This document shows positions 3,705 through 64,000 of a stretch of DNA of 64,000 nucleotides, in pieces. Source of the stretch: Carpediemonas membranifera BICM (lineage: Eukaryota > Protista > Fornicata); assembly GCA_019828565.1 (NCBI GenBank), contig JAHDYR010000042.1, positions 36,548 through 100,547 on the forward strand, written 5' to 3'. Below the pieces are notes generated by a model, which had not been told where the DNA came from, ran no database searches, and saw only the letters and a list, made by a program, of their open reading frames with translations. The position numbers were made by a program, and so were the translations under genes. How positions within the stretch are numbered: the first letter of the stretch is position 1; each line of letters starts with the position of its first letter.

Positions 3705-3737
3705 CGGGAAAGTAGCCTTAATCGAAAGTTATATAAC

Positions 3738-3857
3738 TGTGACGGGCAGGGGACAGGAACACCGAAGGGAAACGATGAACTAACTTTAAATTGACTTTGA
3801 CGATCATTGACCAATCATAAAAGAACTGATTGGGACAGCTAACACAACGTGACAACA
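3738..3857 (-). repeat. Putative 5' LTR of E0 (~120 bp)
   Basis: TGT...ACA ends, AT-richer than flanks, interrupts an integrase-like frame. The partner LTR was not found, so the outer end is inferred. Confidence 0.6.
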
Positions 3858-32218: not shown

Positions 32219-35005
32219 ATGGTCGACGGCAGACTCAAGGCCGACCATGAGAACAACCGGATTAAGCTCGCGCTCGAAGCGTGGGACCTGCGGTCCACAA
32301 TGAATGACGAGGCAGTTGTCCGCATTAGCACACTGACGGGGCACAAAAGCAGAGTGACCGATATCGCCACCTCCCCCGACGGCACCATCGGCACTGCATC
32401 AGATGACGGCACGATCAAGCAGTGGCGCTCCAATGGTCGGTGGATGCCCAGGACGCATGGGGGTCATGTTTTGTGCGTAGCAGTGTCACCAGACGGGTCG
32501 ACCATCGCTTCTGGCGGATCCAACCGTCTCATCAAACTATGGGACACAACCGCGGGCCGGTATAATAAGACCCTCAGAGGGCACACAAGGGTTGTGCGTT
32601 GCCTTGTATTCTCGTCCGATGGCCGCACCCTCGTCTCCGGGTCGGATGACAAGACCGCCAAGATCTGGGACGTCGAGGCAGGGCAGTGCAGGTTGACACT
32701 AACATGACATCACGATATTGTGCGTGGCGTGGCCATCTCCCCCTTCGGCTCAACCATTTTCACTTGTGGTTTGGACCGCACGATCAAGCAGTGGTATATC
32801 ACCACTGGTGACTGCTTCGGTACCATTGACGTTGGTTCACAAGCCATCAGCATTGCCTTGTCACCTGATGGGGCCCAAATAGCTTCCGTTACCAACAGCG
32901 GCTCCATCAAGTTCTGTGATTCCGTAACTGGCCAGCTGACTCGGACCATTGATAGGCGCACCAGCACTGTGCGGAGCCTCGCCTTCTCCCCCGACGGAAG
33001 GCATCTGGTGTCTGGGTCCAATGACAAAACCATCAGGTTCTGGGACATTGCGACGGGAGCCCTGATCTGGACGTATCCGGCGCACAATAGTGCGGTGACA
33101 AGCGTCGCGTTCTCTCAAGATGGCACCACGATCGTGTCTGGATCCTATGACAATGCCGCCAAGGTCTGGAGCACACTCCCCCGCACCCCCAAGTTCCTGG
33201 CCACCTTCAACCAGCTCTGCTCCAGCCCAGTCACCCCGACGCTGATATTCACATCTACTACGACATATGGCTCCACGAAACTCAGTCGTACTCCCCGGCG
33301 ACATCGCTCGCATTATGATCCACTTCCTCGCCACTGGTCTGCCCCGCTACTTTTCGATGACGCTGACCCACCCCACGGCCACTGTCTGGCTGGAGGACAA
33401 CGAGGCCAAGACGGACTCCAATGACGACGAGCTGGCCGAGCTCATCAAACTCGTTAACACGTTCAGACCCGACCAGCATGTTGCCGACTTCTGCTCAGGC
33501 GCCGATTCGGGCATTGTCATATGTGATGCGACAATCGACCACCTGCGGCAGATCGCCTCTCCCGTGGTCTCATCGCAGGTCACTCCAGACGTTTTCTATA
33601 TCAAAATGGCCGGCCGGAGTTCGTCCCAGATCAGCATGTCGGATGGACTATTTATGGTCGAAGATCCGCAGAATGATGCAATCATATCGCAGGCGAACTG
33701 CAATCTTTGGAGCGAGCGGGTGGACGAGAGTCGCGATATGATTGCCAGACTCCGGGCAGAACTCTCTAAGGCGAAGACCACCGTTGCTTCCTTCCAGGCC
33801 ATTGTGAACTTCGCCGCTATCGAGCGGGCTGCTGAGCTGAGCTCCACGCTCGATGGCCGCCCCCTGCTCTCGATCTCCATGCCAACACTTGACACTGGCG
33901 ACACTCCGCCGCTCGCTGGCTTCATCGGCCGACTCGGCAAGGCCAGACGCCATCCAGAGACCCGCATCGCCGAGTACGAGGCGGTCATCGCCCAGGCCAG
34001 CGCCGGTGTCGAGGCACTCGAGGCCAGGATCATCGCTATCCGCGCTGCCTACCAGGCGGCATCGGCTATCGTCAACGCCGCCGAGTCTTTCCCCTCGCAT
34101 GATGAGATGGCCCGCGTGCTCAAGGCCGCTGACAACGAGGTCGTCGGCTTCCCCACCCTCGCGCCCAAGCAGCAGGCCAGGTACGCCACGCTCCGCGCCT
34201 TCCTCCAGCCGGTCGTCCGTGAGACGTGGCTGCGGGCCCTCCGTCGGAAGGAGCTTGGTGATGACACGAGCGCCGAGGAGCGCACTATTCGCGGGTTGAC
34301 TGGCCTGGTGGCCGAGGCTGTGGTCCATCTGGCTGGGTTCGCCGAGGCCGACGCTATCGCTGCGCAGCTCCGGTCGCTGGGCGACTACCAGCACATCAAG
34401 AGCAAGGCCGAAGAACTCGAAGAGGATGTCGATTTCTTCAGCAGGAGACGTAAACACGGCTTAGGCAAGCTTAAAGAGGCGCAGAAGGAACTAGACTCCG
34501 TCAAAGCCAAGCTAGCGCGCATGAAACAGATTCATATCGCTGCACGCCGAAGCTCGTCCGGCTCTGCCCTGAGCTGGGTGCCCTCACCGCGCCCTCGGCC
34601 AGCCTCTTCGCCGAGCTGCGCGAAATGGGGCTGGCCCACCTCATGGATCTACCCGAGATGCGCGCCGACCTGTCTCTGTCTGACTTCACTGTTGAGTCGA
34701 CCGTCAGCGAGAACAGAGCGCTGTGCCAGATCGTGGCCCGCGACGGCCAGACCTACTTCGCCAAGACCTTCAAGCTCGACAGCGCGCACCAGCACAAGCT
34801 CTGCGACCGCGAGGCGGGCATCCTGTCACGCATGTCGCACAGCCCCGCAGTGCCAAAGCTGCACTTCGTCCTCGTCGACAGAGCCGAGCAGACCTGCACG
34901 ATCGTCATGGAGCGCCTCGAGGGCCACCTGCACGACTCGCCTGACACTCAGCGCACACTTCTCCACTGGCTGCTCACCGCGATCCACGATCTGCATAGCG
35001 CGGGC
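32219..35005 (+). pseudogene. WD40 repeat - coiled coil - protein kinase gene, 5' part (disrupted)
   Basis: WD40 repeats with an in-frame TGA replacing the G of a GH motif (32705-32707); frameshifts near 33250 and 34550; kinase N-lobe ends HDLHSAG at the E1 insertion. Confidence 0.75.
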
Positions 35006-35127
35006 TGTTGTGGGTCCTACCCAAAGTTACACAGATTTACGTTATATTTAATAGTCAAGGAGTTTCTCCTCGACACCCTTGTGTCGAGTCTTCTCCTCAG
35101 TAAAAGTTCAACACCCATTGAACCACA
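35006..35127 (+). repeat. 5' LTR of E1
   Basis: TGTTG...ACCACA; identical to 40830-40951; internal hairpin CTCGACAC-cctt-GTGTCGAG. Confidence 0.97.
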
Positions 35128-35148
35128 GTACTAGTACTACCAAAACAT

Positions 35149-38100
35149 ATGGGTACGGAAACTTACAGAAGCCTGAAGAAGAATCCGCCTCTCCTGAAGA
35201 AGTCCTCCATGGACGCTCTTTTGGACTTTGCGGATAACCTCCACGATCATCGCGCCTTAGGCGGCCGCGATGATGTTATTGACCTCATCGAGCCTAGCAT
35301 AGCAGAGCTAGCAGGCCTTAACGACGACGAAGAGGTTGAAGACACTCCTCTCCTGCTCTCCGCGAAGCTCCGTAAGAAACGTCGTGTCGCAGCCCAAGAT
35401 GAACGAGTCCTCAAGCGCCTCGGTGCTGCCCTTCGACCTTCTCGCCCGAGCATGCGTCTACAGCTCTTCCGAGTCCCCGCCAAGTCCTTCGAGCCTGATG
35501 AGGTTGCTCGAGTGAACCGCCGATTCAATCTGCTCTTGAAGCTCGTTCAACCCGAAGATCCCGAGGACGTCTTGAAGGAGACGTACAGCCGCTGCTTCAA
35601 GTTCCCCAACAACAGTCGCATCATGTATCGAGTCAGAGAATCAACGGAGCGCAAGGATCTCAAGGACGCAATGGCTGATGTCCTCGTCATGTCACGCGAC
35701 CTCAAGGAGTCCAAGGAGATGATCGCTTCCTTCGGCGCTGCGGGGGTCTCCGACTCACAGCGTACCAACACCACGCCCTCCCATACACGGCACACGGGGA
35801 GCGGTCCGAAGAACCCTCATCGACGCGAGCCTGACCGCACGAACGTAGCCCCCTCAAAAGGCAAGCCGATCGACAAGCCCAAGCACGAGAAGAAGCCATT
35901 CGTGTGCTTCAACTGCGGTAAGGTCGGTCACTCCGCTCGCCGATGCCCTGCTCCGAAGACAACCTGTTCCAAGTGCCAGAAGCCGGGCCACCGAGCTGAA
36001 TTCTGCCGTTCTGAGGTAAATTCAGCTCGTTGTGTGTTTTCTCTCGGTTCCCGTCAGAGTGTCCTTCCCACCGTCAAGGCTAGCATTCTTAAGCAAGTCG
36101 TGTCCGTCCTGTTCGACTCGGGCGCTGACTGCGCAACCATTGACCCCAAGCTCTGCTACGGCAAGGCAGTGAAGTGGATCTCACACGAGAAGACACTTAT
36201 CGAGACAGTGGGCGGCGTCAGAGAGGCCGAGGGTCAGGTATCCTTCCGCCTCGTCTTAGCGCCCTCGCCATTCACTCCGCGCGGATGCTCTATCACTATT
36301 AAGGCCTACGTCCTGTCGACCGCTTTCGATGTATGCCTGGGTTACCCTCAGATGGTGGAGATCGGCCTTCTCCCTTCGTTGTCTGAGCCTACCAGCGAGC
36401 TCGCAGCCAGCGACGAACCACCTACATTCGAGAAGTACGTCGCGCAAGCCAGAGCCATGTCCTCTTCCTTTTCTCAGAGGCAGGCCGACATCCTCAAGCG
36501 TTACGCCCGGACATTCGTGGACCGTACCGAGCCAAGCCGGCTCGAACCGTATGATTTGGTCCTCAAGGGCGACAGAGTCGTACACATTCGGCCGTACTAT
36601 GTTCCCCCGCCGAAAGTCCCGATCATTCAAGAGCACATTAATACGCTCCTGGCAAAGCGCTACATCGAGGCATGCCAGTCTCAATACGCGAGCCCTACCA
36701 TCATAGTTCCAAAGAAGGGGGGGAAAGACGCGTTTTGTCGTCGACTTCCGCGAGATCAATCAACTAACGGAACCATTCGACTACCCCATCCCTCGCATAG
36801 ACGAAGTTCTCACTCAACTGTCCGGAAAGTCTGTGTTCGCTACCCTAGACTTGTCAGCAGGATACCATCAGATCCCTCTTACTGAACGGTGCCGTCACCT
36901 AACCGCCTTCCGTACTGTTTTTGGTCAATACCAATATACACGGATGCCCTTCGGCTTACGTAACGCCGGAGCGTACTTCCAGAGGGCGATGGAAGACGGG
37001 TTCAAGGGTCTGGTGGGCTCCGCCTGTGTCATATACATTGATGACATCATCGTCATGGGTGCGGATGAGGACGAGTACCTGGGAAACCTCGAAAAAGTCA
37101 TGCAACGCGTTGACAAGCTTAACCTTCAGCTCGGCCGAGATAAGTGCCAGTTCGGTCGGCAAGAGGTCGAGTTCCTCGGGTGGATCATATCCCAAGGCAG
37201 CGTGAAGATCTCACCCCAGCGGACCGAAGATATCGCGAACCTCAAGCTGTCTTCATCCACGAAGGGCATGCAGGGTCTCAACGGATTCCTCAACTATTTC
37301 CGCGATTACATACCCAACTTCGCGGTCCGAGCTAAGCCTCTGCTAGACGCCATGTCCGGTCGGCAGACCCCCTCGAGACGTTCTTCAGAAGTCGCTGGAC
37401 GATCTGAAACAAGCTTTATGTTCGGCCGACGCTCTAGCCATGTTCGACGCGACTAAGCCTCACACCGTCATGACTGACGCATCCGATGTCGGGTACGGAG
37501 CAGTCTTACTCCAAGAGGGCCGACCAGTTTGCTATATGTCGCGTGCGTTCAACGACGTCCAGTCACGCTGGTGTACCGGTGAGAAAGAAGCCTACGCTAT
37601 CGTGGCAGCGTTACAACGATGGCGCAAGTTCCTGTGCTGGGAGAGCTTTACTATTCTCACGGATCACCGGAACCTACTCTATATGTACCGGTCCACCAAC
37701 GCCAAGGTCCGCCGGTGGGCTGATTCGATCGCCGATTTAGATTTCACCCTACAGCACATCGCCGGTCTGGACAACGGTGGAGCCGACGGTCTCTCGAGAG
37801 TATTCTCCATGCAACAGGCGTCGAGGGATCAGGTATCCCGCGCTCATCTCACAGCAGGAGCTCATCTGTCTCGCCGGATGACAACCGAGCAACTTAGGGC
37901 CGACGGTTTGTCTGTCTCCCGTCAAGTCGTAGACGACGTGATTACCGCGTGTCCAGAGTGCCAAGTCTTGGCCCGCCCTCCTGTTGATACACCCGACGGC
38001 CTGCATACAGCTGTAGACCTCCCGTTCCGGCGTGTGGCCATTGACACCATGGGTCCGCTACCGACGGTCAACGGCCTGTCCTACGTGACAGTAATGATCG

Positions 38101-39086
38101 ACATGTGCTCCCGCTGGACAGAGCTAGTCCCGGTCAACAGCACCTCAGCCAAAGACGCAGCCAACGCATTGGTCAACACCTGGATTCTACGATACGGATG
38201 CCCCGAAGTCGTCCAATCGGATGGGGGCTCAGAGTTCAAAAACGCTCTGTTCAAACGCCTCTCCGAAGAGATGGGGTTCGACGTCCACATAACGACAGCA
38301 TACCATCCCCAGAGCAACGGTGTCGTCGAACGCGCGAACAAGGAGGTCGAACGCATCCTCAGAGCCAGGAAGCTGGAGTTAAGGAATAACGATTGGGTAG
38401 CACACCTACCAGTCGCCCAATTCTTGGTCAACTCAATGCCCAGGATCCCGACCCGGTTGACTCCGGCCGAGATCATGTTTGGCGCCAATTTATCAATACC
38501 GTCATCGATCTATATCACGGATGCCGCCTCGGCTGGTCCGCCACAGTCGAAGCTAGCCGCAGCCGATGCCGCCATCCAACTCGCCAAAGCAAGGATTAGA
38601 GCCATGCGCGAAGACGCTCTCGCAAAGGCAACCTCATCGAGAAGCGAGATATTGAGCCGTTTCGTGCTGGTCAAATACTACCCAAGACCACCGAGCAAGC
38701 TAGCCCCGGGCTGGCGCGGCCCCATGAGGCGTGTCGCAGCCGTCAAACGTGATGGTGTTGTCGTCGCATATGAGGTACAAGACCTCAGTCAGTCAGCGGA
38801 CGGTCCAACTATCAAGGTAGACGCGGCACGTGTGCGAAGATTTGACCCAGGCAAGCTCTCGGAGCAACAGATCTATGACCTCGCAGCCGCTTCCGTCGAT
38901 GAGTGGCATGTCGAGCGCATCTCACGCTCTAGAGGCTCGGGCCCCAAGTCAAGGCGCGAGTACCTCGTACACTGGGTCGGATTCGAGGATTCAGAGGCTT
39001 CATTCGAACCTTATTCGCACGTCAAAGATTTGGAAGCCCTCGATACATATTTGAAGTCTGACCAAGCCAAGCGTGACGGTCTGTAA
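35149..39086 (+). CDS. Gag-Pol polyprotein of E1 (apparent frameshifts near 36720 and 37370-37440)
   Basis: CFNCGKVGHSARRC, CSKCQKPGHRAEFC, LFDSGAD, YIDD, TDASDVG, IDTMGP/SDGGSEF/ERANKE; chromodomain YLVHWVGF. Confidence 0.9.
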
Positions 39087-40022: not shown

Positions 40023-40829
40023 GGTTGATGTTTGTTACTTACAGATTGTCGGTGACCATGCGCTTGCGTCCACGATACTTCTGAGCGCGAAGGGAACGAC
40101 AAACGGACGTATGGGCAACAATAAGTGGCCTAGCCAGATCGTCATCACCAAGTTCGGTGATTTTTGGCACGAATTTCCTTCAGAACGGCCTCTACGGCTG
40201 TGTTGTCCGACATCAAATGAGTTGACGGCGACATATCCTGCACATTTCTCGGAAACGGTCGAAGGAACAACTAACAAGGTCATCTTAGTCTTCAAGCATG
40301 CATTTATTGTCGGTAATAAGGCATTAGGAGCTTCCTAGTGCTCCTTCCGGTCAGTTTGATGTTGTTATTCAAGTACAGTTGGACGCAGAAAATTAGAAGC
40401 CTCAGAACTCCTCAACGGAGCCGAATTGGAGCTTCTAAGTACGTTTTTCGGCGTCTGTGTGATTATGAGCGATAAGGGCTCAGCATTGGCAGTGTTTGCT
40501 AGAGCAATCGTTCTTGGCCTTCGAATTACATGGAATGGCATATAACACGTATAAGGTTTGTGAAGACGGCCTAGGAAGGCCGTGGAGGGGCAGTGGTAAG
40601 CCTTTCCGTCACGTTTCACCATTTTTGAAACAGAGCTCACATAGCGGTACCGCAGTTAGATCATGATACCATCATTTTGATTTCGTTCAGCTAGATGCGA
40701 AAGCACTCAGGCCATGGGGTTGCCAGCCCTATGAGTCACCGTTGGCGGTCGGGTGGCACCGTCCAGGCCTTTGGTGAAATGCTGACGTCAAGTCTCTCTG
40801 TCATGCCTATACCAGGCATGGAGGGGCAG

Positions 40830-40951
40830 TGTTGTGGGTCCTACCCAAAGTTACACAGATTTACGTTATATTTAATAGTCAAGGAGTTTCTCCTCGACAC
40901 CCTTGTGTCGAGTCTTCTCCTCAGTAAAAGTTCAACACCCATTGAACCACA
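40830..40951 (+). repeat. 3' LTR of E1
   Basis: Identical to the 5' LTR; preceded by the PPT and followed by the TSD GGGC. Confidence 0.97.
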
Positions 40952-40955
40952 GGGC

Positions 40956-41683: not shown

Positions 41684-42574
41684 CCCTATAGCTGAGCTTT
41701 GCTGGGCGCTGCTGCGGCCATGGGCCGCTAGCGCGCTGCTTGGCTCGTTTCTCCTCGTATAGCTGTCGTAGAGGTCTGATCTGAGCCTTATTATAATAGT
41801 CTGCCCGAGTAGAGTCCAGCCATACCATAAATGTCCCCCATTCCCCCCCTCCCGGTCGCTCATATCTCCAAAATGGCCTATATTCCCTGTAGGAAGAAAT
41901 TTTTACCGGGAGCAAATAGGTATTTTTGGCAGACAACGCCGCTCCGAGCTCTATCGCGCCCAGCGGTGCCTGCAGCGGCCACAGAACAGAGCTAGAATTC
42001 GGGTGATTTTTAATCTCGATCGAAATGCTGCTGAAGCACGCTCTAGAGGGACTGAAGCGCTCCTCGAGGCGCCAATGAATGGAGATAGATCGTGTTGTTC
42101 GCGTTTACTTTGAATACTGCAGCAATAATGGAGATAATGAGATTTGCCGGGAACTGCAGACGAATTCCCTCACTAACTGCCAGCCTGGAATCGTGATAAA
42201 GCTCCTACATGATCACTCTGCATGCCCCAGAAGCATTGTACGCATGCTCAGAACCGCTTGAGCTGATGTTGGGCTGCTCCGCAGGATAAGGGATGATCGC
42301 TCATGGACGTCTGAAAGCAGATCCTGGACGATAGAAGAGACGAAGAGAACACGTAAACATTTACATTCATTGCGACGCGTATGCCAGCTGGGTTGGCACT
42401 GGCGTCATCAACGCAGACTTCGCCATCGCTGTCGGTGGTAGGCGAGTCGTTGATGTTGTTAGGGAGTGATGTGGATGATGGAACTTGCTGTTGAGGGCGC
42501 CGGTGATGCGGGGCTGGCGTGGCGCTGAGGGTGGCGTCGTGGCGCTGGCGTAGGGGTGCTGTGTGGGCGCTGCG

Positions 42575-43680
42575 ATGAGGGCGCCAGGAATGAGGCGCCA
42601 TGGATGAGGCGCCAGGGATGAGGGCGCCAGAGATGAGGCGCCAGGGATGAGGCGCCAGGATGAGGGCGCCAGAGATGAGGCGCCAGAGATGAGGCGCCAG
42701 AGATGAGGCGCCAGAGATGAGGCGCCAGGACGAGGGCGCCAGGATGAGGGCGCCAGAGATGAGGCGCCAGGATGAGGGCGCCAGAGATGAGGCGCCAGGA
42801 TGAAGCACCAGAGATGAGGCGCCAGGGATGAGGCGCCAGAGATGAGGCGCCAGAGATGAGGGCGCCAGAGATGAGGCGCCAGGATGAGGGCGCCAGAGAT
42901 GAGGCGCCAGGGATGAGGCGCCAGGATGAGGCGCCAGGATGAGGGCGCCAGAGATGAGGCGCCAGGATGAGGCGCCAGGAATGAGGCGCCATGGATGAGG
43001 CGCCAGGGATGAGGGCGCCAGAGATGAGGCGCCAGGATGAAGCACCAGAGATGAGGCGCCAGGGATGAGGCGCCAGAGATGAGGCGCCAGGATGAAGCAC
43101 CAGAGATGAGGCGCCAGGGATGAGGCGCCAGAGATGAGGCGCCAGAGATGAGGCGCCAGGATGAGGCGCCAGAGATGAGGCGCCAGAGATGAGGCGCCAG
43201 GATGAGGGCGCCAGAGATGAGGCGCCAGGATGAGGGCGCCAGAGATGAGGCGCCAGGATGAGGGCGCCAGAGATGAGGCGCCAGGGATGAGGGCGCCAGA
43301 GATGAGGCGCCAGGGATGAGGGCGCCAGAGATGAGGCGCCAGGATGAGGCGCCAGAGATGAGGCGCCAGGGATGAGGCGCCAGGATGAGGGCGCCAGAGA
43401 TGAGGCGCCAGGATGAGGGCGCCAGAGATGAGGCGCCAGGATGAGGCGCCAGGATGAGGCGCCAGGATGAGGGCGCCAGAGATGAGGCGCCAGGATGAGG
43501 CGCCAGGATGAGGCGCCAGGATGAGGGCGCCAGAGATGAGGCGCCAGGGATGAGGCGCCAGAGATGAGGCGCCAGAGATGAGGCGCCAGGATGAGGGCGC
43601 CAGAGATGAGGCGCCAGGATGAGGGCGCCAGAGATGAGGCGCCAGGGATGAGGGCGCCAGGATGAGGGCGCCAGAGATGA
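42575..43680. repeat. Tandem satellite A: variable 13-16 bp unit GATGAG(G)GCGCCAG(A/G)
   Basis: Dozens of directly visible copies containing GGCGCC. Confidence 0.97.
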
Positions 43681-44041
43681 GGAGTACAGTATTAGAACCC
43701 CGAAAACGCCATAATACCAACACCAATGAGCTTCATCAACGAAGATATGCTCACTGGTGCCGGTTATGGCGTTTTCGGGTCGTCGATATCTGCTCCCAAA
43801 TCTGCACCTGAATTTTCGTGAGCATGCCCGGGAGCTATGCCTGACGAGTGATACCGCAGGGACCACGCTCAGATGCTCAGCCTCTGCCAGGCGGCACTCG
43901 TTTGAATTCTGCACGAAAAAAAATCAGACGACGAATGATGGGCAAAGGGCCGCGAAAACGCTGTAGTACCAGCGCAAGTAGAGTATTTTGCAATAAAATA
44001 GCTTACTTGCGGTGGTGCTGGCGTTTTCGGGGCCCCAATAT

Positions 44042-44621
44042 CCTCTCTCCCCCGTGCTCTCCCCCGTGCTCTCTCCCGGACGTTCCCCCGGGCTCTCTTC
44101 TCCCGGGGCTCTCTCCCCCGTGCTCTCTCTTGGACGTTCCCCCGGGCTCTCTTCTCCCGTGCTCTCTCCCCCGTGCTCTCTCTTGGACGTTCCCCCGGGC
44201 TCTCTCCCCCGTGCTCTCTCCCGGACGTTCCCCCGGGCTCTCTTCTCCCGGGCTCTCTCCCCCGGGCTCTCTTCTCCTGGGGCTCTCTCCCCTGTGCTCT
44301 CCCCCGGGCTCTCTCCCGGACGTTCCCCCGGGCTCTCTTCTCCTGGGGCTCTCTCCCCCGTGCTCTCTCCTGGACGTTCCCCCGGGCTCTCTTCTCCTGG
44401 GGCTCTCTTCTCCTGGGGCTCTCTCCCCCGTGCTCTCTCCCCCGTGCTCTCTCTTGGACGTTCCCCCGGGCTCTCTCCCCCGTGCTCTCTCCCGGACGTT
44501 CCCCCGGGCTCTCTTCTCCCGGGCTCTCTCCCCCGGGCTCTTCTCCCGGACGTTCCCCCGGGCTCTCTTCTCCTGGGGCTCTCTCCCCCGGGCTCTCCCC
44601 CGGGCTCTCTCCCGGACGTTC
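44042..44621. repeat. Tandem satellite B: pyrimidine-rich CTCTCTCCCCCG(T/G)G / GGACGTTCCCCCGGG units
   Basis: Directly visible. Confidence 0.95.
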
Positions 44622-44653
44622 CAGAAGAGACAATGGCTATTTCTGGAATCCAA

Positions 44654-44909
44654 TGGACAGTTGGTGGCAGTATTGATGTTGTTTATGCAATTAAAGTTCC
44701 TATCGTTTCTTCTAGCTCGTTCCTTGTGTGGTTTCGTGGTTCCTTTGACTCGTTTGATGTTGTTATTGAGTATCATGGGCCATAGCGGCCGTCAGACGCT
44801 ATTGATGTGTTATTATGCAAGCTTATATCCTCAATAAAGCTCTATAGCTCATTGGCACTGAGAAAATAGTGGGAAGTCGGTTCCCACTATTGGTGCACTT
44901 TATGGCTCG
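44654..44909 (+). repeat. 256-bp direct repeat, copy 1
   Basis: Matches 53846-54101 with one mismatch seen; contains AATAAA and hairpin AATAGTGGGAA-gtcgg-TTCCCACTATT. Confidence 0.95.
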
Positions 44910-45511: not shown

Positions 45512-48500
45512 TGTGGTATGGATAGAACAGCTAGCGAAAGAGGTTTAATCAATTGATTGGGACACTACCCCTCTCCTCGAGGTGACGGCGCACGACGGAC
45601 GTGCGGGCGGCGTCAGAGTTGGGACCCTCCCACGTGGCCTTAGCCTCAGGGAAGCCGAGCCACTTAATGAGGAGGTCGCCAGTCTCGTCGTCGACCTCTA
45701 GGACTTTCTCGACGTAATACTCCTCGTCGTCGGTAGCCGCGATGCGCAACAGTTCGGCGTCGCTGAGGGGGCCTTGGCAGATGCGGATTAACTGGCTCAG
45801 GTGGACCCGGCGGCTCTTGCCGCCAGTGAGCGGCGTGATCTCCGCTGCGTAACCGTCGGCGGCTGTGATGCGGAATGGGCCGCGGTGGCCGTGTAGCTTC
45901 GTGGGGCTCTCGTTCTTACGAAGGACCAGAGTGCCCGGCTCGATCGGGGGCGTCGGCTCTGCGGTCCTTGTCATTGCCTGCTGGCGGTTGAGGGCCTGGT
46001 CGGCGAGGATCTGGAGGTGCTCGGTGAGCGCGTCGATGTAGGAGGCTATGTCGTCCAGGGGAGTATGAACTCTACCCTCCTCCTTGGGTGCGATCGTGAA
46101 GTCGCGAGCGGAGGCATGCTTGCCCATCAAGAGAGCAATGGGTTCGACGCCGGTGACGGAGTGGACCGTAGTGTTCAGGATGTACTGGACGTATGGGACC
46201 ACGGAGGCCCAGGCGTCGTAACGGTCAAACATCAGACAGAGCACACGTAAGTGTCGCTTGACTTCCTGGTTGCGTCTCTCGGCCAGGCCGTTTGACTGAG
46301 GGTGGAAAGGGATTGTCCGGTGGTACGTGACCTGCAAGCGATCAAGGAAAGCTTCTATCATCCGATTGCGGTACTCGGGGCCGTTGTCCGAAAGGAACTC
46401 GCGAGGCACACCGTAGCGTCCGATGATGGACCAAAGTGCCAGCCCGACCGTCGTCGCGTTGTTGGAAGCTGTGGGGATGAGCTCCGTGAAGCGGGTAAAC
46501 ATGTCGGTTGCCACCACGATGTATCTGAAACCCTCGGAGTCGACAGGGAAAGGACCCATGGTGTCTACAGCAATGGTCTGGAAGGGTCGGTCGCGCAGAG
46601 AAGACTGCGTTGTGGTCTTAATGAAAGCGGAGAGGCGTGCCTTAGCGCAGTACACGCAGGTTGACACGACTGCGTGCACGTCGGAGTGGAGGCCTGGCCA
46701 ATCGTGCCCAAGCTGGCGGACGTTCCTGATGGTGGCCTGCTCGCCCTCGTGGTATCGGTGAGCTTCTTGCACGATCTTGCGCTTGGCGTCTTCGTCGAGC
46801 TCGGCCTCTGAGACGTTGTTGACCTGCGTGACTGTGGCCTGCGGGTTGTATCGACTGAGTGCGTCGGCCAGTGTGTTCTGCGCGCCTGCGATGTGTCTGA
46901 TGACGAACTCGAACTCTTGGATCATAAGCAGCCAGCGGAGGTGCTTACGGTTTTCCTGGCCAGCCTTGGAGTGCAGGTAGACCAAGTTGCGGTGGTCCGT
47001 CCAGATCGTCAGGTCCTGGTGGACTCTAAAGATGGGCGAGAGGTCAGGCCGAGTGAGGCAGTAGATGATCGCGAACAGCTCCTGGTCGTACGTGCACCAA
47101 CGCGACTGTGTGTCGTTGAAGACCTTTGAGAAGAATGACACGACGCGCCATGTGTTGTCCGAGTCAAGCTGCAGTAAGACACCGCCGATGCCTTCGAGAG
47201 AGGCGTCGGTCTCGAGGCGCCAGGGCCTGCTCTGGTCCGGATGGGCGAGGACCTCTTCGTCTGTCACGGCCTGCTTGAGCTGATCAAACAGAGCCTGAAG
47301 CGTGTCGTCCCAGTCGTTGAAGGTGTAGGGTGGGACCTTGCTGACCAAGGCCTGGAGCGGCTTGAGGCGTGTCTGGCAGTCGGGGATATAGTCACTGAGG
47401 TATGTGAACATACCGATGATCATGCGTAGGTCCTTGACCGAGTGAGGTGCGGCGAGGTCCTGCATGGATCTGACACGAGTAGGGCTCATGCGGCGGCCCT
47501 TGCCATCGACGATATCGCCGAGGATCTCGATAGACGTCGCCCCGAAGACACACTTGTCGCCGCGGAGGCAGACGTTGCGTTCCTCTGCGATACAGAGTAG
47601 GCGGTCGACGTGGTCTAGAAGCTCCTGAGGTGTCTTGGCTCGACCAAAGATGTCATCGATGTAGTTCTTCGTACCGTCGGCGCGCACAGGGGCAAGGATT
47701 GCCTGGATGGCCCGCTGGAACTGTGACGGTAGGTTACGAAGACCAAAGGGTGCAAAGTTGTACTCTTTGAACCGGCCTGGCAGCGTTATAGCGGTGAGGT
47801 ACTTGTGGTCTTCGCGTACTGGCATTTGATGAAAACCTGACCGGAGGTCCTAAGCGAAGAAGTACTTGGCACCGATGAAGTCGTTGGTGAAGGTGCGGAT
47901 ATCTGCGAGGGGAACCTGTCTGGTGTAGTTACCGAGTTAAGCTCGCGGTAGTCGGCGCAAAGTCGTGACTCGCTTGACTTCTTCACTACGATGACGGCTG
48001 CGGATGCCACGTGGCTGTAGGAATCGCGTACGATGCCCTGTCTGTCCATGTCGTCGATAATCTCGTGCACTCTTTCGGCGGTGGATGCCGTGAGCGGTCG
48101 AGGGGCATGGTTGGGTAGGGGTGCGCCTGGCACGATGTCAATCGTTGCGGCGGCGATCTGGGCGCCGTCAGGGTGCAGCTCGCCGAATACCGGTGCGTGC
48201 CGGCGGATGACATCAGCCATCTCGGCTTTGAGCGGGAAGTCGCTTGCGATGCGTGTGCCAAGTGGGCCCGCGTCGTCGCTGACGATGTTGTTGACTGCGT
48301 GGAAGTCATCGGTCTGGTCGTCGGGGAGGCCTTCGTCCTCGCCGTCGTGAACTTTGCGGGCGGAGGCGAAGCATGATGCCCTCGTCGGACATGAGGCCTA
48401 AGAACCACAATATATCCGAGCCGATGAGGACCTTATCGGCCCTGCCGCTGATGACGTGCAGGGGGCCAATCGATGATCGTTCGGCGGTCGCCCAAGCGGT

Positions 48501-50039
48501 CCGCGACCAGCGTTGTCTCGAAGGTGCCGTGTTGCTGGAGACCTTGGTCGTCAGGGCCCGTCAGCTGGACCATGTCGGGGCCCCTCCTGCCAAACTGGGC
48601 GAGTGCGTTGGCGAGGTCCAGCGAGATGGTGGACACTACGGAGCCAGGGTCGACCGTCGCTGAGATAAGCGTGTCACCTATCGTCACTGGAATCCGGAGA
48701 AGCCGGCCCGGCGAGTAAGCGTGCTCGGCATGCTCTACGTTCTGAACGCTGCCTTGTTGGGGCTTGTTGGGGGGTGTCGGTGTGAATGGTGTGGCCTGCT
48801 TGGGGTTCTGCCTGAACTGCCAAGGACCCTTCGACGTCGATGGTTGCTGGGGCTGCTGTGGTTGTCCAGCGGCCTGTCGTTGGGGACCAACTGCCTGCGG
48901 CTGGCGTGACTGGTTCTGCTGGGCGGCTGAGGCTTGGTGTGGTGTGCGTTGAGAGGCCTGGCCCTGGCGGGGATCTTGAGGTTGGCGGCCCGCCGGTGTG
49001 GCTCTGTTAGCCTGACTCTGGCGCTTCAGCAGCCGGCACTCTTCAGTAGAGTGGCCGCCGGGACCGTGGACGCGGCAGGTCTTGCGGCCGTTGCCCGGTG
49101 TAGCGGGGACCTTGGCGCCTGCCATGGGACCGGAGGTCCTCTGGCAGAAGGACCAAGGCGTGACGATCGTCCCATCGGAGTTAGTTGGCAAAGCCAGGAT
49201 GCGGTGCTGGACGTCATCGATGGTGGTGGCGCCGTCGGCGAAATCCTCGAAGGCGAGGGCGGCTTCGGTGACGTCAAAACCGCGGGTCAGCACGCGGAAA
49301 AGCGTGGATATCAGCCTCTTCTCGGTGAGGGGCGTGTAACCGTTTTCTTCTGTCGGGAACTTGGGGTTCAGCTGGCGACAGTGCTTGCCGAAAGCTAGGA
49401 ACATCTTCTGCATAGAGGTGATGTCTCCACCTGTGAGCGTGGTCCTTTCCAGGATCGCCGCCGCGCGAGCGGCTGGGTTGGCCCGCTGGGCGGGTGTCAG
49501 CTCGAAGTACGCGGTGTAGGTGAGCAAGAGGTCCGCCCGCTCGCGGAGCTCCTCCCTCGAGAGGCGCTCTGAGGCGTTGGTCGAGGTGTCTGGGGCCGTC
49601 GGTGGCGGACTGACCGCCTTGAGGGCTGCGGTGATGAAGGCCTGCTTCAGCTCGTCTGAAGCGATCGAGGAAGCCGCTTGGGTGTCTATATCCTTGAGCT
49701 TGGCCAGGAGAGCGCTGAGCTCCTCGGCCGATTTGTCGTCGTCGTTCTTCTCGGGTTCATTCTGCTCGGAAGGCTTATGAATGGGAGGACGGATCTCTGT
49801 CTCAAAGAAGCATTGGAAATCCTCGAATGTTGGGAATCTCGTTGTCGGGATGAACGCCGCGCGGATTTCGGCTAGTTTCTCGCTCCCGAGGAAAAAGAGG
49901 ATGCTAGACGGCTGCTTTTTGCTTGCAACATGAAGACGATACTCGTCTAAACGGCTGTTGCTGACTAAAACCATGACAGTGATCACTGTGGTATGGATAG
50001 AACAGCTAGCGAAAGAGGTTTAATCAATTGATTGGGACA
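45512..50039 (-). mobile_element. Full-length chromodomain Ty3/gypsy retrotransposon E2 with 53-bp LTRs
   Basis: Identical LTRs 45512-45564 and 49987-50039; 5-bp TSD CGCTG; PPT GAGGAGAGGGGTAG; gag-PR-RT-RH-IN-chromodomain. Confidence 0.97.
45549..49974 (-). CDS. Gag-Pol polyprotein of E2 (several apparent frameshifts at 47830-48480)
   Basis: CRVHGPGGHSTEEC knuckle, VDPGS protease, YIDD, TDASLEG, VDTMGP/SDNGPEY/ERRNQE; chromodomain LLIKWLGF. Stop codon lies inside the 3' LTR. Confidence 0.9.
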
Positions 50040-53845: not shown

Positions 53846-54101
53846 TGGACAGCTGGTGGCAGTATTGATGTTGTTTATGCAATTAAAGTTCCTATCGTTT
53901 CTTCTAGCTCGTTCCTTGTGTGGTTTCGTGGTTCCTTTGACTCGTTTGATGTTGTTATTGAGTATCATGGGCCATAGCGGCCGTCAGACGCTATTGATGT
54001 GTTATTATGCAAGCTTATATCCTCAATAAAGCTCTATAGCTCATTGGCACTGAGAAAATAGTGGGAAGTCGGTTCCCACTATTGGTGCACTTTATGGCTC
54101 G
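53846..54101 (+). repeat. 256-bp direct repeat, copy 2
   Basis: Matches 44654-44909. Confidence 0.95.
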
Positions 54102-56323: not shown

Positions 56324-59300
56324 TGTGAAGCGAACTGTTTATAGGTAAACCGTCTAAAGGTAAAAATGGTCTAAACTACCGTGACACTACCCTCTCTTTG
56401 GAAGAAAACCCCTCCTGGGGAGCAAAAGAAACCAAAGAGGGACCTTAAACGTAATTAGCAAGGTTCTTACGGGCCTTCCGAGCACGGCGCTTAACCTCTT
56501 CGACGTGGGACACAGACCTTAGGTGCTGTTCCGTGCGTTCATCATAGTTTTTCCACTTAATGGTCACCATACCGGTTTTCCAGTCGATCTTCTCGATCTT
56601 TTCGATCTCAAACTATTCCTTATCGGATTCGGCTAATTGCTTCATTTGAGTCTCTTCAAGATCTGTCTCAAATGGCATCAGTTTGTCGACGTGGGTAACT
56701 CTAATGTCTCCTGTGACAATAGATTGCAGCTTCACCTTATGGTTCGGCAGTACCTCGTGAATCTTCCACGGGCCTCTGTTCGGGCAGTCGAGCTTCTTGG
56801 GGTTTTCATGTTTCCATAGGACATAGTCACCTACTTCTACCCCCTTCGTCTCGATCTGGCTCCTGGCGGATGTGCCTTCCCTTACGGAGTCTTCCAGTGT
56901 CCTTAGGACCTCCTGGAGAGATTGCTTGAACTCAACAATCCTCTTGTTGCCCCACTCTGCCCCGTCCCACTCAGTGGAAAATAGGTTGTGAGGCTGACCG
57001 AATATTAATTCATGAGGGGAGAACTGCGTAGCAGTGTGTGTCGTGCCATTAAGTATCATTTGAACGGTTGGCACCAATGTTGCCCACTCGTCTCGGCTCG
57101 CAATAGCGAGGACCATCCACCTTAAGTGGCGACCAATCTCTGCATTTCTCCTCTCCACCAGCCCATTACTCTGGGGGTGATATGGGATCGTGAAGTGCCG
57201 AAGCACCTTCAGCTCCGTGAGCATCGCGTCCAGTATGGAGTTTGCGTATTCCGGACCCCCATCAGATTGGAGTTCGAGAGGGACACCGTATCTCGTAAAG
57301 ACTCGGTCCCATAGGGCCTGTGAAACTGTGCGTGCGTCATCGCTGGCTACGGGGATAAGCTCCGTATACCTAGTGAACATGTCAACTGCTGTGACGATGT
57401 ATCGTGCCCCCAGATTATCCAAGGGCAGTGGTCCAATGGTGTCCACAGCCACGGTCTCCCATGGCTTGCCTCTAAGGCTGGATCCTGCTTCGACCTCAAT
57501 GTAGTTTCTTATTCTCGACTTGAGGCAGATCGGGCACCGCTTAACGGTTCGTCTGACATCATTCAGCATGCTAGGCCAAAAACCCATCTTCTTCAGCATC
57601 TGATACGTGGCATTTGAGCCAGTGTGGAATTGATGTGCCAACTGCAGGAAGGTGTCGCGTAGCTTACCGTCCGGGATGATCGGGACTCCTTGTACGAAGT
57701 ACGTAGAGTCCACCAGGGTGCAGCCGTCTAGGCCTTCCCAACCGATCCTATGTTCCTCAGGGAGGCTGGCCTGGGCCTCGCTGATATCCCATAGGGACGG
57801 TATCACCTCGCTCTCCTCTGCTTCTAGCAGATTTAAGGAGTGTGAGTCCCGGCAGGTGCTCTGCACCCGCGACAGCATATCTGCCATGACGTTAGCGTTA
57901 CCAGATATATGACTAATGGTGAACGTGTAGTCCGATAGGACGGTAACCCAGCGAAGGAGCTTCTTTGATAGCTCTTTCCTCTGTAGTAAATATACCAAGT
58001 TGCGGTGATCCGTATGAATCTGGATATCATCCTTCAACCTAAAGAGTTGGGCCATATCGGGCCGCGTCAGGCAGTATATGATCGCATGAAGCTCTTGTTC
58101 ATACGTGGGCCACCTGGACTGGGTGGCACTGTGGCTCTTAGAGAACAGTGAGACGAGTTCCCGGTTACCGGACTCGTCCTCCTGGACTAAAATACCCCCG
58201 AGTCCTTCGTTAGACGCGTCCGTCTCAAGGATCCATTTCTTAGAAAGGTCGGGGAAACTCAGGATCAAGTCGGATGATAGCCGTTCCTTGAAAGCTTCGA
58301 AAGCTTCATCCTGCTCTTGGGTCCAGGTGATCAGCTGTTGATCTTTTGACGCTTTAAGCATGTCATTAAGCGGCTTTAGGAGGCGCGACGCGTCCGATAC
58401 GAACTGCGCGACATAGTTAAATGATCCTAGAGTGCGCTGAAGCTGCTTCGGAGTTTCCGGTCTGGGGATGGCTCTTACGGCATCTACCCTCTCGGGGGAA
58501 AGTTGCTTCCCTTTTTCTGAGATAATATATCCCACGGCCTCGATGTGATCTGTACCAATTACACATTTTGGGCCCTTCAGACGTAGTCTATACTCCTTGC
58601 AGATGTCAAAGACTTTCTCGAGGATCTCTAAGAACTCCTCTTCTGTCTTGGCGTAGACCATAAGGTCATCAATGTAAATGTCAACTCCTTTGTGGAGGAC
58701 CGGGGCGAACGCCTTTTGCATTGCCTTTTGGAACCTAGAGGGTGCATTGCAGAGCCCAAATGGGCACCGGCGGAACTCCATGTAATGGTCCGGTGTGACA
58801 AAAGCTGTCTTCGGAATGTCCGTCTCCTCCATGCTCATTTGATAATAGCCCTGCCGTAGGTCAAGAGCCGCAAAAATCTTGCATCCAGCTGCCCTATCGA
58901 CGAACTGACGGAGGTTTGGTAGTGGGAATTTGTCCTTCACTGTATTGGCATTGAGGGCCTTGTAGTCGACACATAGTCTGATCTTATCTGATCCCTTGTG
59001 TCCCTTACGGACAACTACAATGGGTGAGCTGAACGGTCCCGATGAGGGTTGGATTATCCCGTCCGCCACTAGGTTCTCGAGCTCATCATTCACGAGCTCA
59101 TTTGTTGTCTCAGCGAGGCTTCTAGGCCGCAGCTGGACGAGCTCCCTCACGATCTATGAGCTCTATAGACATTTTGTCCAGGCGAGACCCTTCACTAGGC
59201 AGGGTTTCGTCAAAGACCTCTTCGGCCTCAAGAATCTTAGATATGATTTGGTCCCGAATTTTTAGATTCGGGGACCGTTACACCAAGACTTCCTGGGTGT

Positions 59301-60059: not shown

Positions 60060-63000
60060 TGTGGTGAGGCGCAGTTTAAGGTTTTGGTTTTTGACCATTT
60101 TCACCACTGCGGTTTCCAGGAGTAAATCAGTTCTCATCCATTAATTGGAAAGTTCCCTTCAAGGCCAAACCAAGCACAGTATCGATACTACATGCAGTCT
60201 TTTGGCATCACCATCCCGTATTTGCGATCGCTTACGCGTTCTGCCTTCTTCACCTTCCAGGACGACGTCGATCACTACCAAGTTCAAGCGAGAGCCCTCA
60301 ATCTCCAACTACCTCCCCTTGCAACCTTCCTTAGCCCATCTGTCACGCGCCTCGTGCGCCTCCGCGTCCCTATCGACGATATCCCCGACGGCGACCTCTT
60401 CGACACTATCGCGACCGAGTTCTTCAAGTTTCATACACAAGTTGAAGCTTACCAGTCTATCCAGCGCCTCCGCCTGCGCTCCCTCGAGCCGCCGGCCCTC
60501 TTAGCCCACATAGACACTTACCATAAGACCCTCGCGCTATGTGATGATAACACTCGCCCCATCGATCAACAGACGCGGAAGCTCTTCACTGCCTCGCTCC
60601 CCTCGGCCCTCAAGACTCGCCTCAAGATCGTTAGCCCCGAGACCTTCGCTGAGGCCTGTGAGGCGGCCATCACAGAGCTCGATGACATAGTCTCCATCCG
60701 CGCGCAGAGCGAATCTTTCCGCGACGAGCCCCGCCTCGACATGCCGCCCCGGCGCCCTCCGCCCATCAAGGCCAAGGCTGAGCCGACCGCCCCTACCGTC
60801 GATCGCCGGCCGAAGTCGGAGCTCATCTGCCACGGTTGTGGCCTCACAGGTCATGTACGGCCCGAGTGCCCTCACCGGGATCACCCCGGCTTCTTCGCGC
60901 ATGGCATCCGTCGCCAAGCGCTCAACCTCACTGCTAAGTTGGCCGCCCACACCAACAACAGCAGCCCTCATGTGAGCCTCCATTTCTCTGACCACGTCCC
61001 TCGCACCGCCTTGCTTGATACCGGTGCCAGCCTTAACTTCATCCCTCCAGCGCTTGCCGAGGGAGATGCACCTGCGTCTCTTCGAGGCCCACGTCCCGCT
61101 CGAGACGGCCAACGGCACTATTACCGCGGAGTATACGACCCGTCCCGTGACTATCACACTGCAGCTCGAGCGCCCAGTGGAGGTCACGGCGGAGTTCTTC
61201 GTCCTCCCTTCCGCCGGAGAGCTAATCATCGGCGTGCCCACGATACGCGCCGTGGGTTTGTTGCCCGACCTGCTCGCCCCGCGCGCCGAGGCAGAGTTCG
61301 TTGAGGCCACCCCGGTGCCCCTGCCTGACGATCGTGCACCAGCCGAGATCGCTCATCCGCTGATCCAGGACTACCCGGACCTGTTCGCTTCTGAACTGCC
61401 TGGTGTCATCGGTGTTGAGCCTTTCCACATTGACCTATCCGACACCGACGTCGCCCCGTTTCCACCGCGCCGTATGTCGCCCGCCCTAGCTGAGGCCGTC
61501 AAGGCAGAGGTAGATGGGCTCCTCGCCAGAGGCATTATCCAACCCTCGACCTCGCCTTTCGCCTCCCCCGCCTTCACAGTGCCGAAGCGCGGGGGCAAGC
61601 GTCGCATGGTAATTGACTACCGGCGCCTGAACGAGAAAACGGTCCCCCTGCAGTACCCGCTAAGCAACCCGGCTGAGCTGCATCGTAGGCTCGCCGGCCA
61701 TAACTACTACACGACGATTGACCTGGTCAGCGGATATCACCAGGTTCCGGTGGACCCGGCCTCCCGTCCTCTCACGGCATTCGCGACGCCCGCTGGCCTG
61801 TTTGAGTTCTGCCGTCTCCCTTTCGGTCTACGTTGTGCCCCTGCCTTTTTCCAACGTATGATGATGTCTGTGCTCAACGGACTCGTCGGTCGCATCTGTG
61901 AGGTATACCTAGACGACGTGATCATCCATGGGGACACCCAGGAAGAGCTGGATCGCAACACGCGCGCCGTATTCGACCGCCTCCAGCAACACCAGTTCCG
62001 TCTGGGTTGTGACAAGTGCCAGTTCGCGAAGACCGAGGTAGAGTACGTGGGACACCTCATCTCGAAGAAAGGCATCCGCACATCACCGGAGCGCGTCGCT
62101 GCTATCGTCGCGATGAAGCCCCCTTCGTCGGTCGCGGCGGTGCGCTCATTCACGGGTATGACTAACTACCTGCGGGAATTTATTCCGAACTACGCATCGG
62201 TCCTGGCGCCCATCGTCGACCTCACCAAGGCAAAAGTGCCGTTCGTCTGGGGCAAAGCCCAACAGCAGGCCTTCGAGGAAGTGAAGCGCCTCATCATGCG
62301 CCGACCGATCCTCGCGTACCCCGACTACTCCCGGACGCTCATCGTGCGTACCGACGCCTCCACCGCCGGTTGCGGCGGTGTTCTCCTACAGGAGAAGGAC
62401 GGTGAGGAACAAGTCATCGCCTACACCTCCCACCGTTTCACTGAGGCCGAGCAACGCTGGAGCACCATCGAGCAGGAGCTCTTTGGCGTGTTCCATGCCA
62501 TCATCAGCTTCGAGCATTTCATCCTAGGGCACCCCTTCGTTGTCGAGACGGACCATCGGAATTTGACCTATCTTGAGTCCACCACTACGCCTAAGCTCGT
62601 CCGCTGGCGCCTTCGCCTCTCCGAATACGACTTCACGGTCCGTCACATCGCCGGAGTCAACAACGAGGTGGCCGATTGCCTTTCCAGATGCCTGACGATT
62701 CGCTCACAGCGCGTGGCATCCCCGGTGGACATTACCAACCAGGTACGGCAGCTTTTTGGCAAGTGCCACAACGCCCGTGTTGGACACATGGGCACCCGCA
62801 TCACGACGGATCGGATCGCCGCCCAGCTACCTTCGTTTGCCCGCAAGGCGATCGAGAAACACGTCAAGCCCCCTAGTCCGTACATGCCCGGTGTGCCAGC
62901 TCACGCGACAGCGCGCCAAGGTCAGTGTAGACCTCCCTCGCCAGCCCACAATGGCACCGTACCCCATGCACACCTGGGCCGTGGACTTTATTGGCCCGTT

Positions 63001-64000
63001 CCCGGAAGAACACGGTTTCCGTCACATCCCTAGCCGCCGTTGACTGCTTCTCCCGGTTCGTGGAGCTAGTTCCCACGCCCGATTGCACCGCGCAGTCAGC
63101 GGTCACGGCCATCATGCAACTGGTGGGCCGCTACGGATGCCCGGCACACATTCGCTCTGATCAGGGCCCCCACTTTACCGCCCACCTGTTTTGCTCAGCT
63201 CTCGCGCATCCTGAACATTCAGCACGACTTTACGCTCCCGTACCATCACCAGTATAACGGCATCATCGAGCGCCGCAACAAGGAAGTGAACCGCCACCTC
63301 CGCGCCGCCATGAACGAGCTGACCGATGATTTAGCCGACTGGGTTGCCTGTCTCCCGCTTGTACAGCGCACTCTGAACTGCACGCCGTGTGCAGCCACCG
63401 GCAACATACCCCCGGCCAACATCATGTTCGGTAACCTCACCGACACGGACCGAGTACTGCTACACAACCCGGTGGAGGGGTGGGCGACGTCGCATTGTAC
63501 TACGACAACCTGCTTGAGGCACAGAGACAGCTTGTCAAGGCCGTGCCAGTTCCTAAGCCACGTCCGGTCACCCAGACCACTTTCACTGTCGGCCAAGCTG
63601 TTGTGGTCACCAGGCCCGACAATGCCCGTGGCCCCTCTCGTCTGAGCCCCATCTATATGGGCCCCTTACACCGTAGCCTCCCTCGACGGCACACTCGCCA
63701 CCCTCACGACTCTTCGAACTCGTGCCGAAGAGACGTATGATCTCCCGCCGCCTCGTTCCCTTCCTCGGCGACTACACCCCGACGACCTCACCGCCTTCGC
63801 TGCCGCCGGTGAGCAAGAATACACCGTCGAAGACATCATCGACCACCGCTCTGGTCGTACCAAGACCCGTTTCCGTTTCCGTGTCCGCTGGGCCGGCTAC
63901 GGTCCCGATGACGACACCTGGCTTCCCTATGCCGAGGTCCGTGACCTCGAAGCCCTCGACCGGTACTTGTCGAAGACCGGCATTCAGCTGTAATAGAGGG
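60060..64000 (+). mobile_element. Chromodomain Ty3/gypsy retrotransposon E4 nested in E3; runs off the window at its PPT
   Basis: Putative 5' LTR 60060-60178 (TGTGG...AAGCACA; start inferred), palindrome 60178-60189, gag ATG 60192, stop 63991-63993, PPT start AGAGGG. Confidence 0.9.
60192..63993 (+). CDS. Gag-Pol polyprotein of E4 (multiple apparent single-base frameshifts)
   Basis: CHGCGLTGHVRPEC, LLDTGAS, YLDD, TDASTAG, VDFIGP, SDQGPHF; chromodomain YTVEDII...FRVRWAGYGPDDDTW. Confidence 0.88.

Follow-up and report, generated by a model that had tools for sequence, protein, structure and literature searches.

Five families of Ty3/gypsy elements (E0–E4) are found in the 64 kb stretch of the Carpediemonas membranifera genome that was analysed here (the window), and in all five of them a perfect palindrome of 12–14 nt starts on the last one to three bases of the 5' LTR (ACA|GT..ACT). 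Judging from the pattern of substitutions between families, the self-complementarity of this boundary site is clearly under selection. We give an even chance to the reading that the palindrome is the primer-binding site (PBS) and that the primer is the element's own sense RNA, acting through intermolecular self-priming; the dimer, the cut and the extension are steps that we infer. The more specific proposal that a sister genomic RNA primes in trans, with pairing through the palindrome, an RNase H nick and extension of the 3' end into U5–R of the partner, is put forward tentatively, as somewhat short of an even chance.

The window and its Ty3/gypsy elements

Carpediemonas membranifera is a free-living metamonad. 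The window corresponds to the last 64 kb of a 100.5 kb contig, the end of which coincides with the end of the window (the genome comprises 24.2 Mb in 69 contigs). The host genes in it are ordinary eukaryotic genes with long ORFs without breaks, among them GLE1, a sugar transporter, HMG-CoA synthase and kinases. In the elements, Pfam identifies protease, RVT_1, RT_RNaseH, Integrase_H2C2 and rve domains in the order PR–RT–RNase H–IN, and a Chromo domain is found C-terminal to the integrase in E1 and several relatives. This domain order, together with TG...CA LTRs, a TSD and a polypurine tract (PPT), identifies chromovirus-type Ty3/gypsy elements (Metaviridae). LTR pairs, TSDs of 4–5 bp and PPTs are all present in E1, E2 and the copies L067 and L068. 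A tRNA-complementary PBS (TGG...) beside the 5' LTR, by contrast, is absent from these Ty3/gypsy elements. Such a site is typical of Ty3/gypsy elements but not strictly defining, and Tf1 and Skipper also lack one. A search for the Copia-type reverse transcriptase (RVT_2) gave no match in the genome, with the positive control of the same search equally silent.

All LTRs of the window families start with TGT, end with ACA and measure 53–122 bp. The relatives of the host may typically have promoters and leaders that are very short, which would fit both these sizes and the near-absence of a leader. The LTRs of E2 and E3 (53 and 63 bp) are unusually short for autonomous gag-pol elements that need U3, R and U5. 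An earlier sequence-only reading of this DNA had claimed boundary palindromes for E0, E1, E2 and E4, and all four are present at the coordinates given there. The LTR ends were set independently of that reading and again fall at ACA: that of E1 was derived from its LTR pair and TSD, and those of E0, E2 and E4 from copy breakpoints (the points where dozens of near-identical genomic copies start matching, plus LTR-only matches) and from full copies with TSDs.

The 5' LTR of E1 (35006–35127, + strand, 122 bp, TGTTG...CCACA) is an exact repeat of its 3' LTR (40830–40951, + strand), and the 4 bp TSD GGGC flanks the element at 35002–35005 and 40952–40955. In element sense the junction reads ACA|GTACTAGTACT, and the first base of the palindrome AGTACTAGTACT (35127–35138, + strand), a candidate primer-binding or self-pairing site, is the last base of the LTR. 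The gag ORF with its zf-CCHC domain (35149–36885, + strand) has its ATG 21 nt after the LTR, the part of the pol ORF that encodes RNase H, integrase and chromodomain according to Pfam lies at 37440–39086 (+ strand), and the polypurine tract GGAGGGGCAG (40820–40829, + strand) directly abuts the 3' LTR. The gag, protease and pol segments occupy three different frames. The genome holds at least 30 near-identical copies of E1, and in the 30 copies compared the 5' 395 bp, from the LTR to early gag, are 98–100% identical. The frames and the near-identical copies suggest either that the frameshifts are programmed or that a defective master copy was amplified recently. E1 sits within a kinase-like gene, the long ORF of which (33267–35005) resumes from 40956 with the catalytic-loop motif HRDLKPEN; the arrangement suggests that a family with about 30 identical copies has recently disrupted this gene.

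E0 is read from the − strand. Its 5' LTR (3738–3854, − strand, 117 bp, TGTCACG...GTCACA) was delimited by copy breakpoints, and the full copy L068 has an identical LTR pair and the TSD CCTAT. The junction, again in element sense, is ACA|GTTATATAACT, with the palindrome AGTTATATAACT at 3727–3738 (− strand), and the gag-protease ORF (2184–3704, − strand) has its ATG 34 nt after the LTR.

E2 is complete in the window (45512–50039, − strand, TSD CAGCG), and its full copy L067 is flanked by the TSD GACCG. The TSDs of E0 and E2 are thus 5 bp long, compared with 4 bp in E1. The 5' LTR (49987–50039, − strand, 53 bp, TGTCCCAATCAATTG...CCACA), placed by copy breakpoints, is identical to the 3' LTR (45512–45564, − strand), just before which the PPT GAGGAGAGGGGTAG is found, and the pol ORF with RT, RNase H and integrase covers 45549–47825 (− strand). 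The junction in element sense is ACA|GTGATCACTGT. Here the palindrome ACAGTGATCACTGT (49976–49989, − strand) is 14 nt long and takes in the terminal ACA of the LTR, and the gag ATG follows 1 nt further on. The E2 LTR also has its own internal perfect palindrome of 12 nt, AATCAATTGATT, which lies beside a CCAAT motif and is possibly a promoter. Two repeats of another kind are seen in this region. Between E1 and E2, a minisatellite of about 2 kb (42496–44627) consists of 14 nt units (GATGAGGCGCCAGA-like) and then of C/T-rich units with lengths of about 16–54 nt. A direct repeat of 256 bp (44654–44909 and 53846–54101, 99.6–100% identical and 9.2 kb apart) brackets E2; it lacks TG..CA termini and is no LTR of any family described here.

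E3 is represented by its 3' LTR (56324–56386, − strand, 63 bp), with the PPT AAAGAGAGGGTAG just before it, and by a pol ORF with RT, RNase H and integrase (56613–59150, − strand) that is 99% identical to a Carpediemonas membranifera protein. It is broken by the insertion of E4 at 60060. The palindrome that the sequence-only reading had predicted after the 5' LTR of E3 would lie beyond the end of the contig at position 64000, and it is seen in another copy, L058. This uninterrupted copy shows the E3 5' LTR with the palindrome AGTATTAATACT and reads ...CTTCACA|GTATTAATACT, a perfect 12-mer. The 5' LTR of E4 (60060–60178, + strand, 119 bp, TGTGGTG...AGCACA) is defined by copy breakpoints and by solo or 3' LTR matches that end at 60178. 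Its junction in element sense is ACA|GTATCGATACT, its palindrome AGTATCGATACT (60178–60189, + strand) is followed by an ATG 2 nt on, and its gag and pol ORFs (RT and RNase H; 60192–63033, + strand) belong to an element that runs past the end of the contig. Elsewhere in the genome (G000:C1:899749–911755), 5' ends of E4 are met about every 3.94 kb (899749, 903692, 907636 and 911579). This regular spacing suggests a tandem array with common LTRs or a shorter deletion derivative of E4.

Conservation, covariation and spread of the boundary palindrome

The window contains 17 perfect palindromes with arms of at least 6 nt, about 15.6 being expected by chance, yet four of them lie exactly on four 5' LTR ends, which excludes a chance origin as the sequence-only reading had argued. 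Two of the others are the internal motif of the two E2 LTRs. Among the copies examined, the palindrome is intact in 30 of 30 for E1, nine of nine for E4 and 10 of 11 for E0.

The same design is found beyond the window. Our survey covered about 303 kb of loci of this genome, which had been fetched for other purposes, plus relatives. At least four to six further families of this genome have it, with the cores GATC, AATT, AAGCTT and TTTAAA, and with ATTAAT in a second LTR context. Several of these additional sites are gag-proximal, the downstream ORF being homologous to gag of other families. Contigs of a second assembly (GCA_002919055.1) and an independent Logan run with Pol homologues provide four families with the design: AGTGTACACT after an 81 bp LTR, AGTATTAATACT, AGAAACGTTTCT and CAATTTCGAAATTG. 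In AGAAACGTTTCT and CAATTTCGAAATTG the normally fixed GT..AC is altered on both sides. An element from a marine metagenome (33% GC, about 32% Pol identity) reads ...CATTACA|GTAAATTTACT. At the 16 sites compared, which represent at least 15 families, the palindrome begins 1–3 nt inside the LTR end and has its centre 4–5 nt after it, the final A of the LTR lies within the palindrome at all 16 sites, and the family-specific cores take at least 12 different forms. The distant relatives L077, L139, L140, L141 and L142, in which the junction between LTR and leader is missing or ambiguous, were left out of these counts either way; L139 has AGAAAATTTTCT close to the start of its contig, where the LTR end is undefined.

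The 11 sites with their centre 5 nt after the LTR end were aligned and scored for symmetric pairing. The inner six pairs are Watson–Crick in 66 of 66 cells. Two-sided (compensatory) changes occur at five of the pairs, in 15 cells, and among these 11 sites there is neither a one-sided change nor a G·U pair in the inner six positions. The covariation score of 0.597 compares with 0.136 ± 0.047 for shuffled alignments (0 of 500 reached it), and slid registers give at most 0.138. One position further out, C faces the first base beyond the palindrome, and at 10 of the 11 sites these two do not pair; the duplex is therefore sharply bounded at the terminal A of the LTR. That base after the palindrome (alignment column 16) is A in seven of 11 sites of the 12-mer class, where it faces the invariant C of the LTR ACA. 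This recurrent C/A mismatch at the edge of the duplex could mark a cleavage site, and it recalls the A/A mismatch of GalEa elements (see below).

The Pol proteins of the window families are 29–37% identical and the families have no detectable nucleotide similarity to one another; for this reason their palindromes are not copies of each other. Contrary to the sequence-only reading, these families are not unrelated. In a FastTree analysis of 127 Pol sequences, the ten verified palindrome bearers all group within a single 33-row clade that has an SH-like support of 100, the tree being unrooted and made by a fast method and the palindrome being verified in those ten of the 33 rows. The clade also includes a Dysnectes brevis protein and metagenome sequences, and the rows labelled as animal, plant or green algal lie outside it. 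The simplest reading of the tree is one old lineage with a single origin of the palindrome trait. With about 30 identical E1 copies, one of them within a kinase gene, the clade is by this sequence evidence active at present.

Proposed priming from the palindrome

In reverse transcription U5 ends where the 3' end of the primer anneals, give or take one or two bases trimmed by integrase. Since the LTR ends on the first base or bases of the palindrome, minus-strand synthesis must begin from a 3'-OH annealed to the palindrome. The gag ATG lies 1–35 nt past the palindrome in the window families and 3–44 nt past it in relatives, and because the LTRs are so small and gag begins so soon there is no room for a separate PBS. 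The claim that the palindrome occupies the place of the PBS is therefore supported in silico: the LTR boundary fixes the primer site and no other site fits before gag.

There is no TGG next to any LTR end in the window families and the boundary motif does not recur inside their LTRs, both as had been noted before. The tRNA genes used for comparison are a partial set of 60 genes of this genome (63 scored of 497 candidates) with 25 distinct sequences and 19 anticodons. Against these 25 tRNAs, the longest complement to the 25 nt boundary segments is 6–7 nt, the same as the mean for shuffled sequences, and none of the tRNA 3' ends matches over 7 nt or more. The proposal of tRNA-independent priming thus stands as regards the missing TGG and the shuffled-level complementarity to the 25 tRNAs compared, and extends as far as this partial set does. 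The stretch right after the gag-pol stop codon of the relative L069 (L069:4333–4410) has a T-arm-like GGTTCGAATCC motif, and ARAGORN calls no tRNA in it. No Rfam family is found in the window at gathering score. The longest complement to the palindrome within the LTRs is also 6–7 nt, with duplex energies no better than those of shuffles in four of the five families, and we agree with the sequence-only reading that Tf1-style fold-back is not supported, the LTRs holding no complement to the site. In E0 a duplex between palindrome and LTR of −8.1 kcal/mol does stand out (0 of 300 shuffles); it was rejected as a general solution, since the other four families show nothing of the kind.

A primer that pairs with a self-complementary palindrome must itself carry the sequence of the site. 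Because the core is specific to the family and takes at least 12 forms, only one RNA is sure to contain the matching sequence, the sense RNA of the element itself, and this RNA is favoured as the primer. Self-complementarity would not be needed if the partner were an antisense RNA or a fixed RNA of the host.

In the proposed mechanism, two co-packaged element RNAs would pair antiparallel via the palindrome in a duplex of 10–14 bp, with predicted energies of −11 to −22 kcal/mol. Next, one of the two strands would be cleaved at the 3' edge of the duplex or close to it, the RNase H associated with the RT being the most plausible nuclease, as in the release of the Tf1 self-primer; self-primers made by RNase H are known in Tf1/sushi/Tcn1 (PMC6317226). 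Extension of the new 3'-OH into U5–R of the partner RNA would produce minus-strand strong-stop DNA, and the plus strand would subsequently be primed by the canonical polypurine tract. If the plus strand copies the primer, each cycle would replace the PBS by its reverse complement. A site is stable under such rewriting only if it is a perfect Watson–Crick palindrome, and within this model the absence of G·U pairs and one-sided changes would follow. A cut 3' of the palindrome would sever the donor RNA from its coding part, so that the model requires an uncut partner RNA as template, and it also requires a stop to plus-strand copying beyond the palindrome. It counts against the model that a palindromic PBS also permits unproductive DNA–DNA self-pairing.

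The palindrome may instead be only a dimerisation or packaging signal, comparable to the retroviral DIS and to the PBS-region palindromes of HIV-2 and MMTV, with minus-strand synthesis begun in some way that calls for hardly any sequence match or none, such as a short host RNA as primer or a de novo or protein-primed start. Palindromes that dimerise RNA are well established in retroviruses and Ty1 (e.g. PMC8096270 and PMC6844567). The self-duplexes predicted by cofold are stable (−11.4 to −22.2 kcal/mol, with −16.0 for E1 and −22.2 for E2), and family-specific cores would secure dimers of like with like. A pure dimerisation signal needs no fixed register, yet the palindrome always overlaps the last 1–3 bases of the LTR, and in E2, E4 and L069 the gag ATG follows within 1–3 nt, which leaves no other primer site. 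A retroviral DIS, moreover, usually occupies the loop of a hairpin at some distance from the U5 edge and is present alongside a tRNA PBS, and neither the loop nor the tRNA PBS is seen here; we consider this explanation unlikely. If the palindrome worked as double-stranded DNA, as the site of a dimeric protein such as a host transcription factor, an integrase or a methyltransferase-like activity, the total lack of G·U would likewise be expected from constraint at the DNA level. The cores do resemble typical dyad sites of 4–6 bp (ACTAGT, ATCGAT, AAGCTT, TTTAAA, GATC and AATT), and the second, internal palindrome AATCAATTGATT of the E2 LTR is promoter-like. The sequence of a protein site should be conserved, however, while here only the symmetry is, the core taking at least 12 forms and differing even between families of one cell, and the priming of reverse transcription would be left unexplained. 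We therefore find a DNA-level role improbable.

A hairpin formed in cis, as outlined for the 'Conserved Hairpin Site' of GalEa elements, has the closest published anatomy: there, the palindrome at the boundary takes in the last A of the LTR and is accompanied by a complementary segment, CHSeq2, 12–41 bp downstream (PMC5445492). The downstream segment would fold onto the palindrome, be cleaved and prime into U5. For the present elements this is very improbable. Within the next 120 nt there is no such partner, exact complements reaching at most 6–7 nt and RNAduplex energies equalling those of shuffles in all five families, and the sequence 3' of the palindrome is coding. The least probable explanation, to which we attach hardly any weight, is a host tRNA, an internal tRNA region, a tRNA half or a tRNA fragment that primes at the palindrome. 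Priming by half-tRNAs and internal tRNA regions is known in Copia lineages (PMC6317226), the tRNA set compared is incomplete, and some tRNAs carry palindromes of 10 nt (TGGGCGCCCA, TGGTGCACCA and GGTTCGAACC), which in TGGGCGCCCA and TGGTGCACCA are at the 3' end. These tRNA palindromes are GC-rich and unrelated to the element cores. Besides the missing TGG at the LTR and the shuffled-level complementarity to the 25 distinct tRNAs, the 12 or more AT-rich cores would need as many different tRNAs, each with the palindrome in question, and covariation that keeps self-complementarity is unexpected with a fixed host RNA as partner.

Comparison with known priming systems

The start of minus-strand synthesis is among the most conserved steps of retroelements, with few known exceptions to tRNA priming. 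Intermolecular self-priming from the palindrome would, if true, be a categorically new mechanism and, alongside the tRNA, the tRNA half and the fold-back of Tf1, a fourth way to prime the cDNA of LTR elements. Initiation would then be coupled to dimerisation of the genome, and the persistence of none but perfect Watson–Crick palindromes would be accounted for. With their tiny leaders and the sharp predictions that follow, the present elements make the priming of PBS-less elements such as GalEa and Skipper directly testable. For annotation, these elements with their LTRs of 53–122 bp will escape LTR finders that demand a tRNA PBS or a minimum LTR length of 100 bp. In the open-access literature we found no description of a palindromic PBS in Ty3/gypsy elements, of LTR elements in Carpediemonas or of dimer or trans priming. 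The sequence-only reading needs correction in that a structural parallel has been published for the fungal GalEa elements (PMC5445492).

The Tf1/sushi/Tcn1 elements are likewise of the Ty3/gypsy chromovirus type and without a tRNA PBS, and their use of the element's own RNA as primer after an RNase H cut is the model adopted here. In Tf1 of Schizosaccharomyces pombe the PBS pairs in cis with the 5'-terminal 11 nt of the transcript, which form the start of R within the LTR, whereas the present LTRs hold no complement and the site is self-complementary, which implies the pairing of two RNAs. The Pol clade with the palindrome is also separate from the rows with a Tf2-type SH3 domain. In the dictyostelid Skipper a polypyrimidine tract replaces the PBS, and its authors suggested a novel kind of self-priming (Spaller et al., 2016; PMC5006619). 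Skipper elements resemble ours as chromoviruses with neither a TGG PBS nor an LTR complement; the replacement there is a degenerate polypyrimidine stretch and not a palindrome.

The DIS of HIV-1, the PBS palindromes of HIV-2 and MMTV and the PAL sequences of Ty1 are, like the present sites, short perfect palindromes of the 5' leader that pair genomic RNAs and have variant cores with compensatory changes. As judged from the predicted energies, the present sites too are self-complementary sequences able to form an intermolecular duplex. Those systems keep a tRNA PBS, while here the palindrome is the only element between LTR and gag and is in register with the LTR end.

The closest likeness is to the GalEa elements of fungi, which are without a tRNA PBS and which, as their authors state, agree with none of the known priming models (Donnart et al., 2017; PMC5445492). 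The short conserved sequence next to the GalEa 5' LTR becomes perfectly palindromic only if the last base of the LTR, an A, is counted in, giving A|CTGATCAGT or A|CTAATTAGT (PMC5445492). Both groups lack a tRNA PBS, have a palindrome directly after the 5' LTR that includes its final A and show no complement in U5 or R, and the cores GATC and AATT also occur in the Ty3/gypsy sites. GalEa belongs to the Copia superfamily and to Pezizomycotina, whereas the present elements are Ty3/gypsy and come from a metamonad and marine protists. CHSeq2, which in GalEa forms a hairpin with a conserved A/A mismatch, has no counterpart here. The outer triplets are ACT..AGT in GalEa and AGT..ACT here, and the present cores show much greater diversity. 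LTR elements that combine a boundary palindrome with the lack of a PBS are thus already known, and what is new is their occurrence in a Ty3/gypsy clade and without a hairpin partner. If the proposed priming by a paired element RNA is true, it may also account for the fungal GalEa site.
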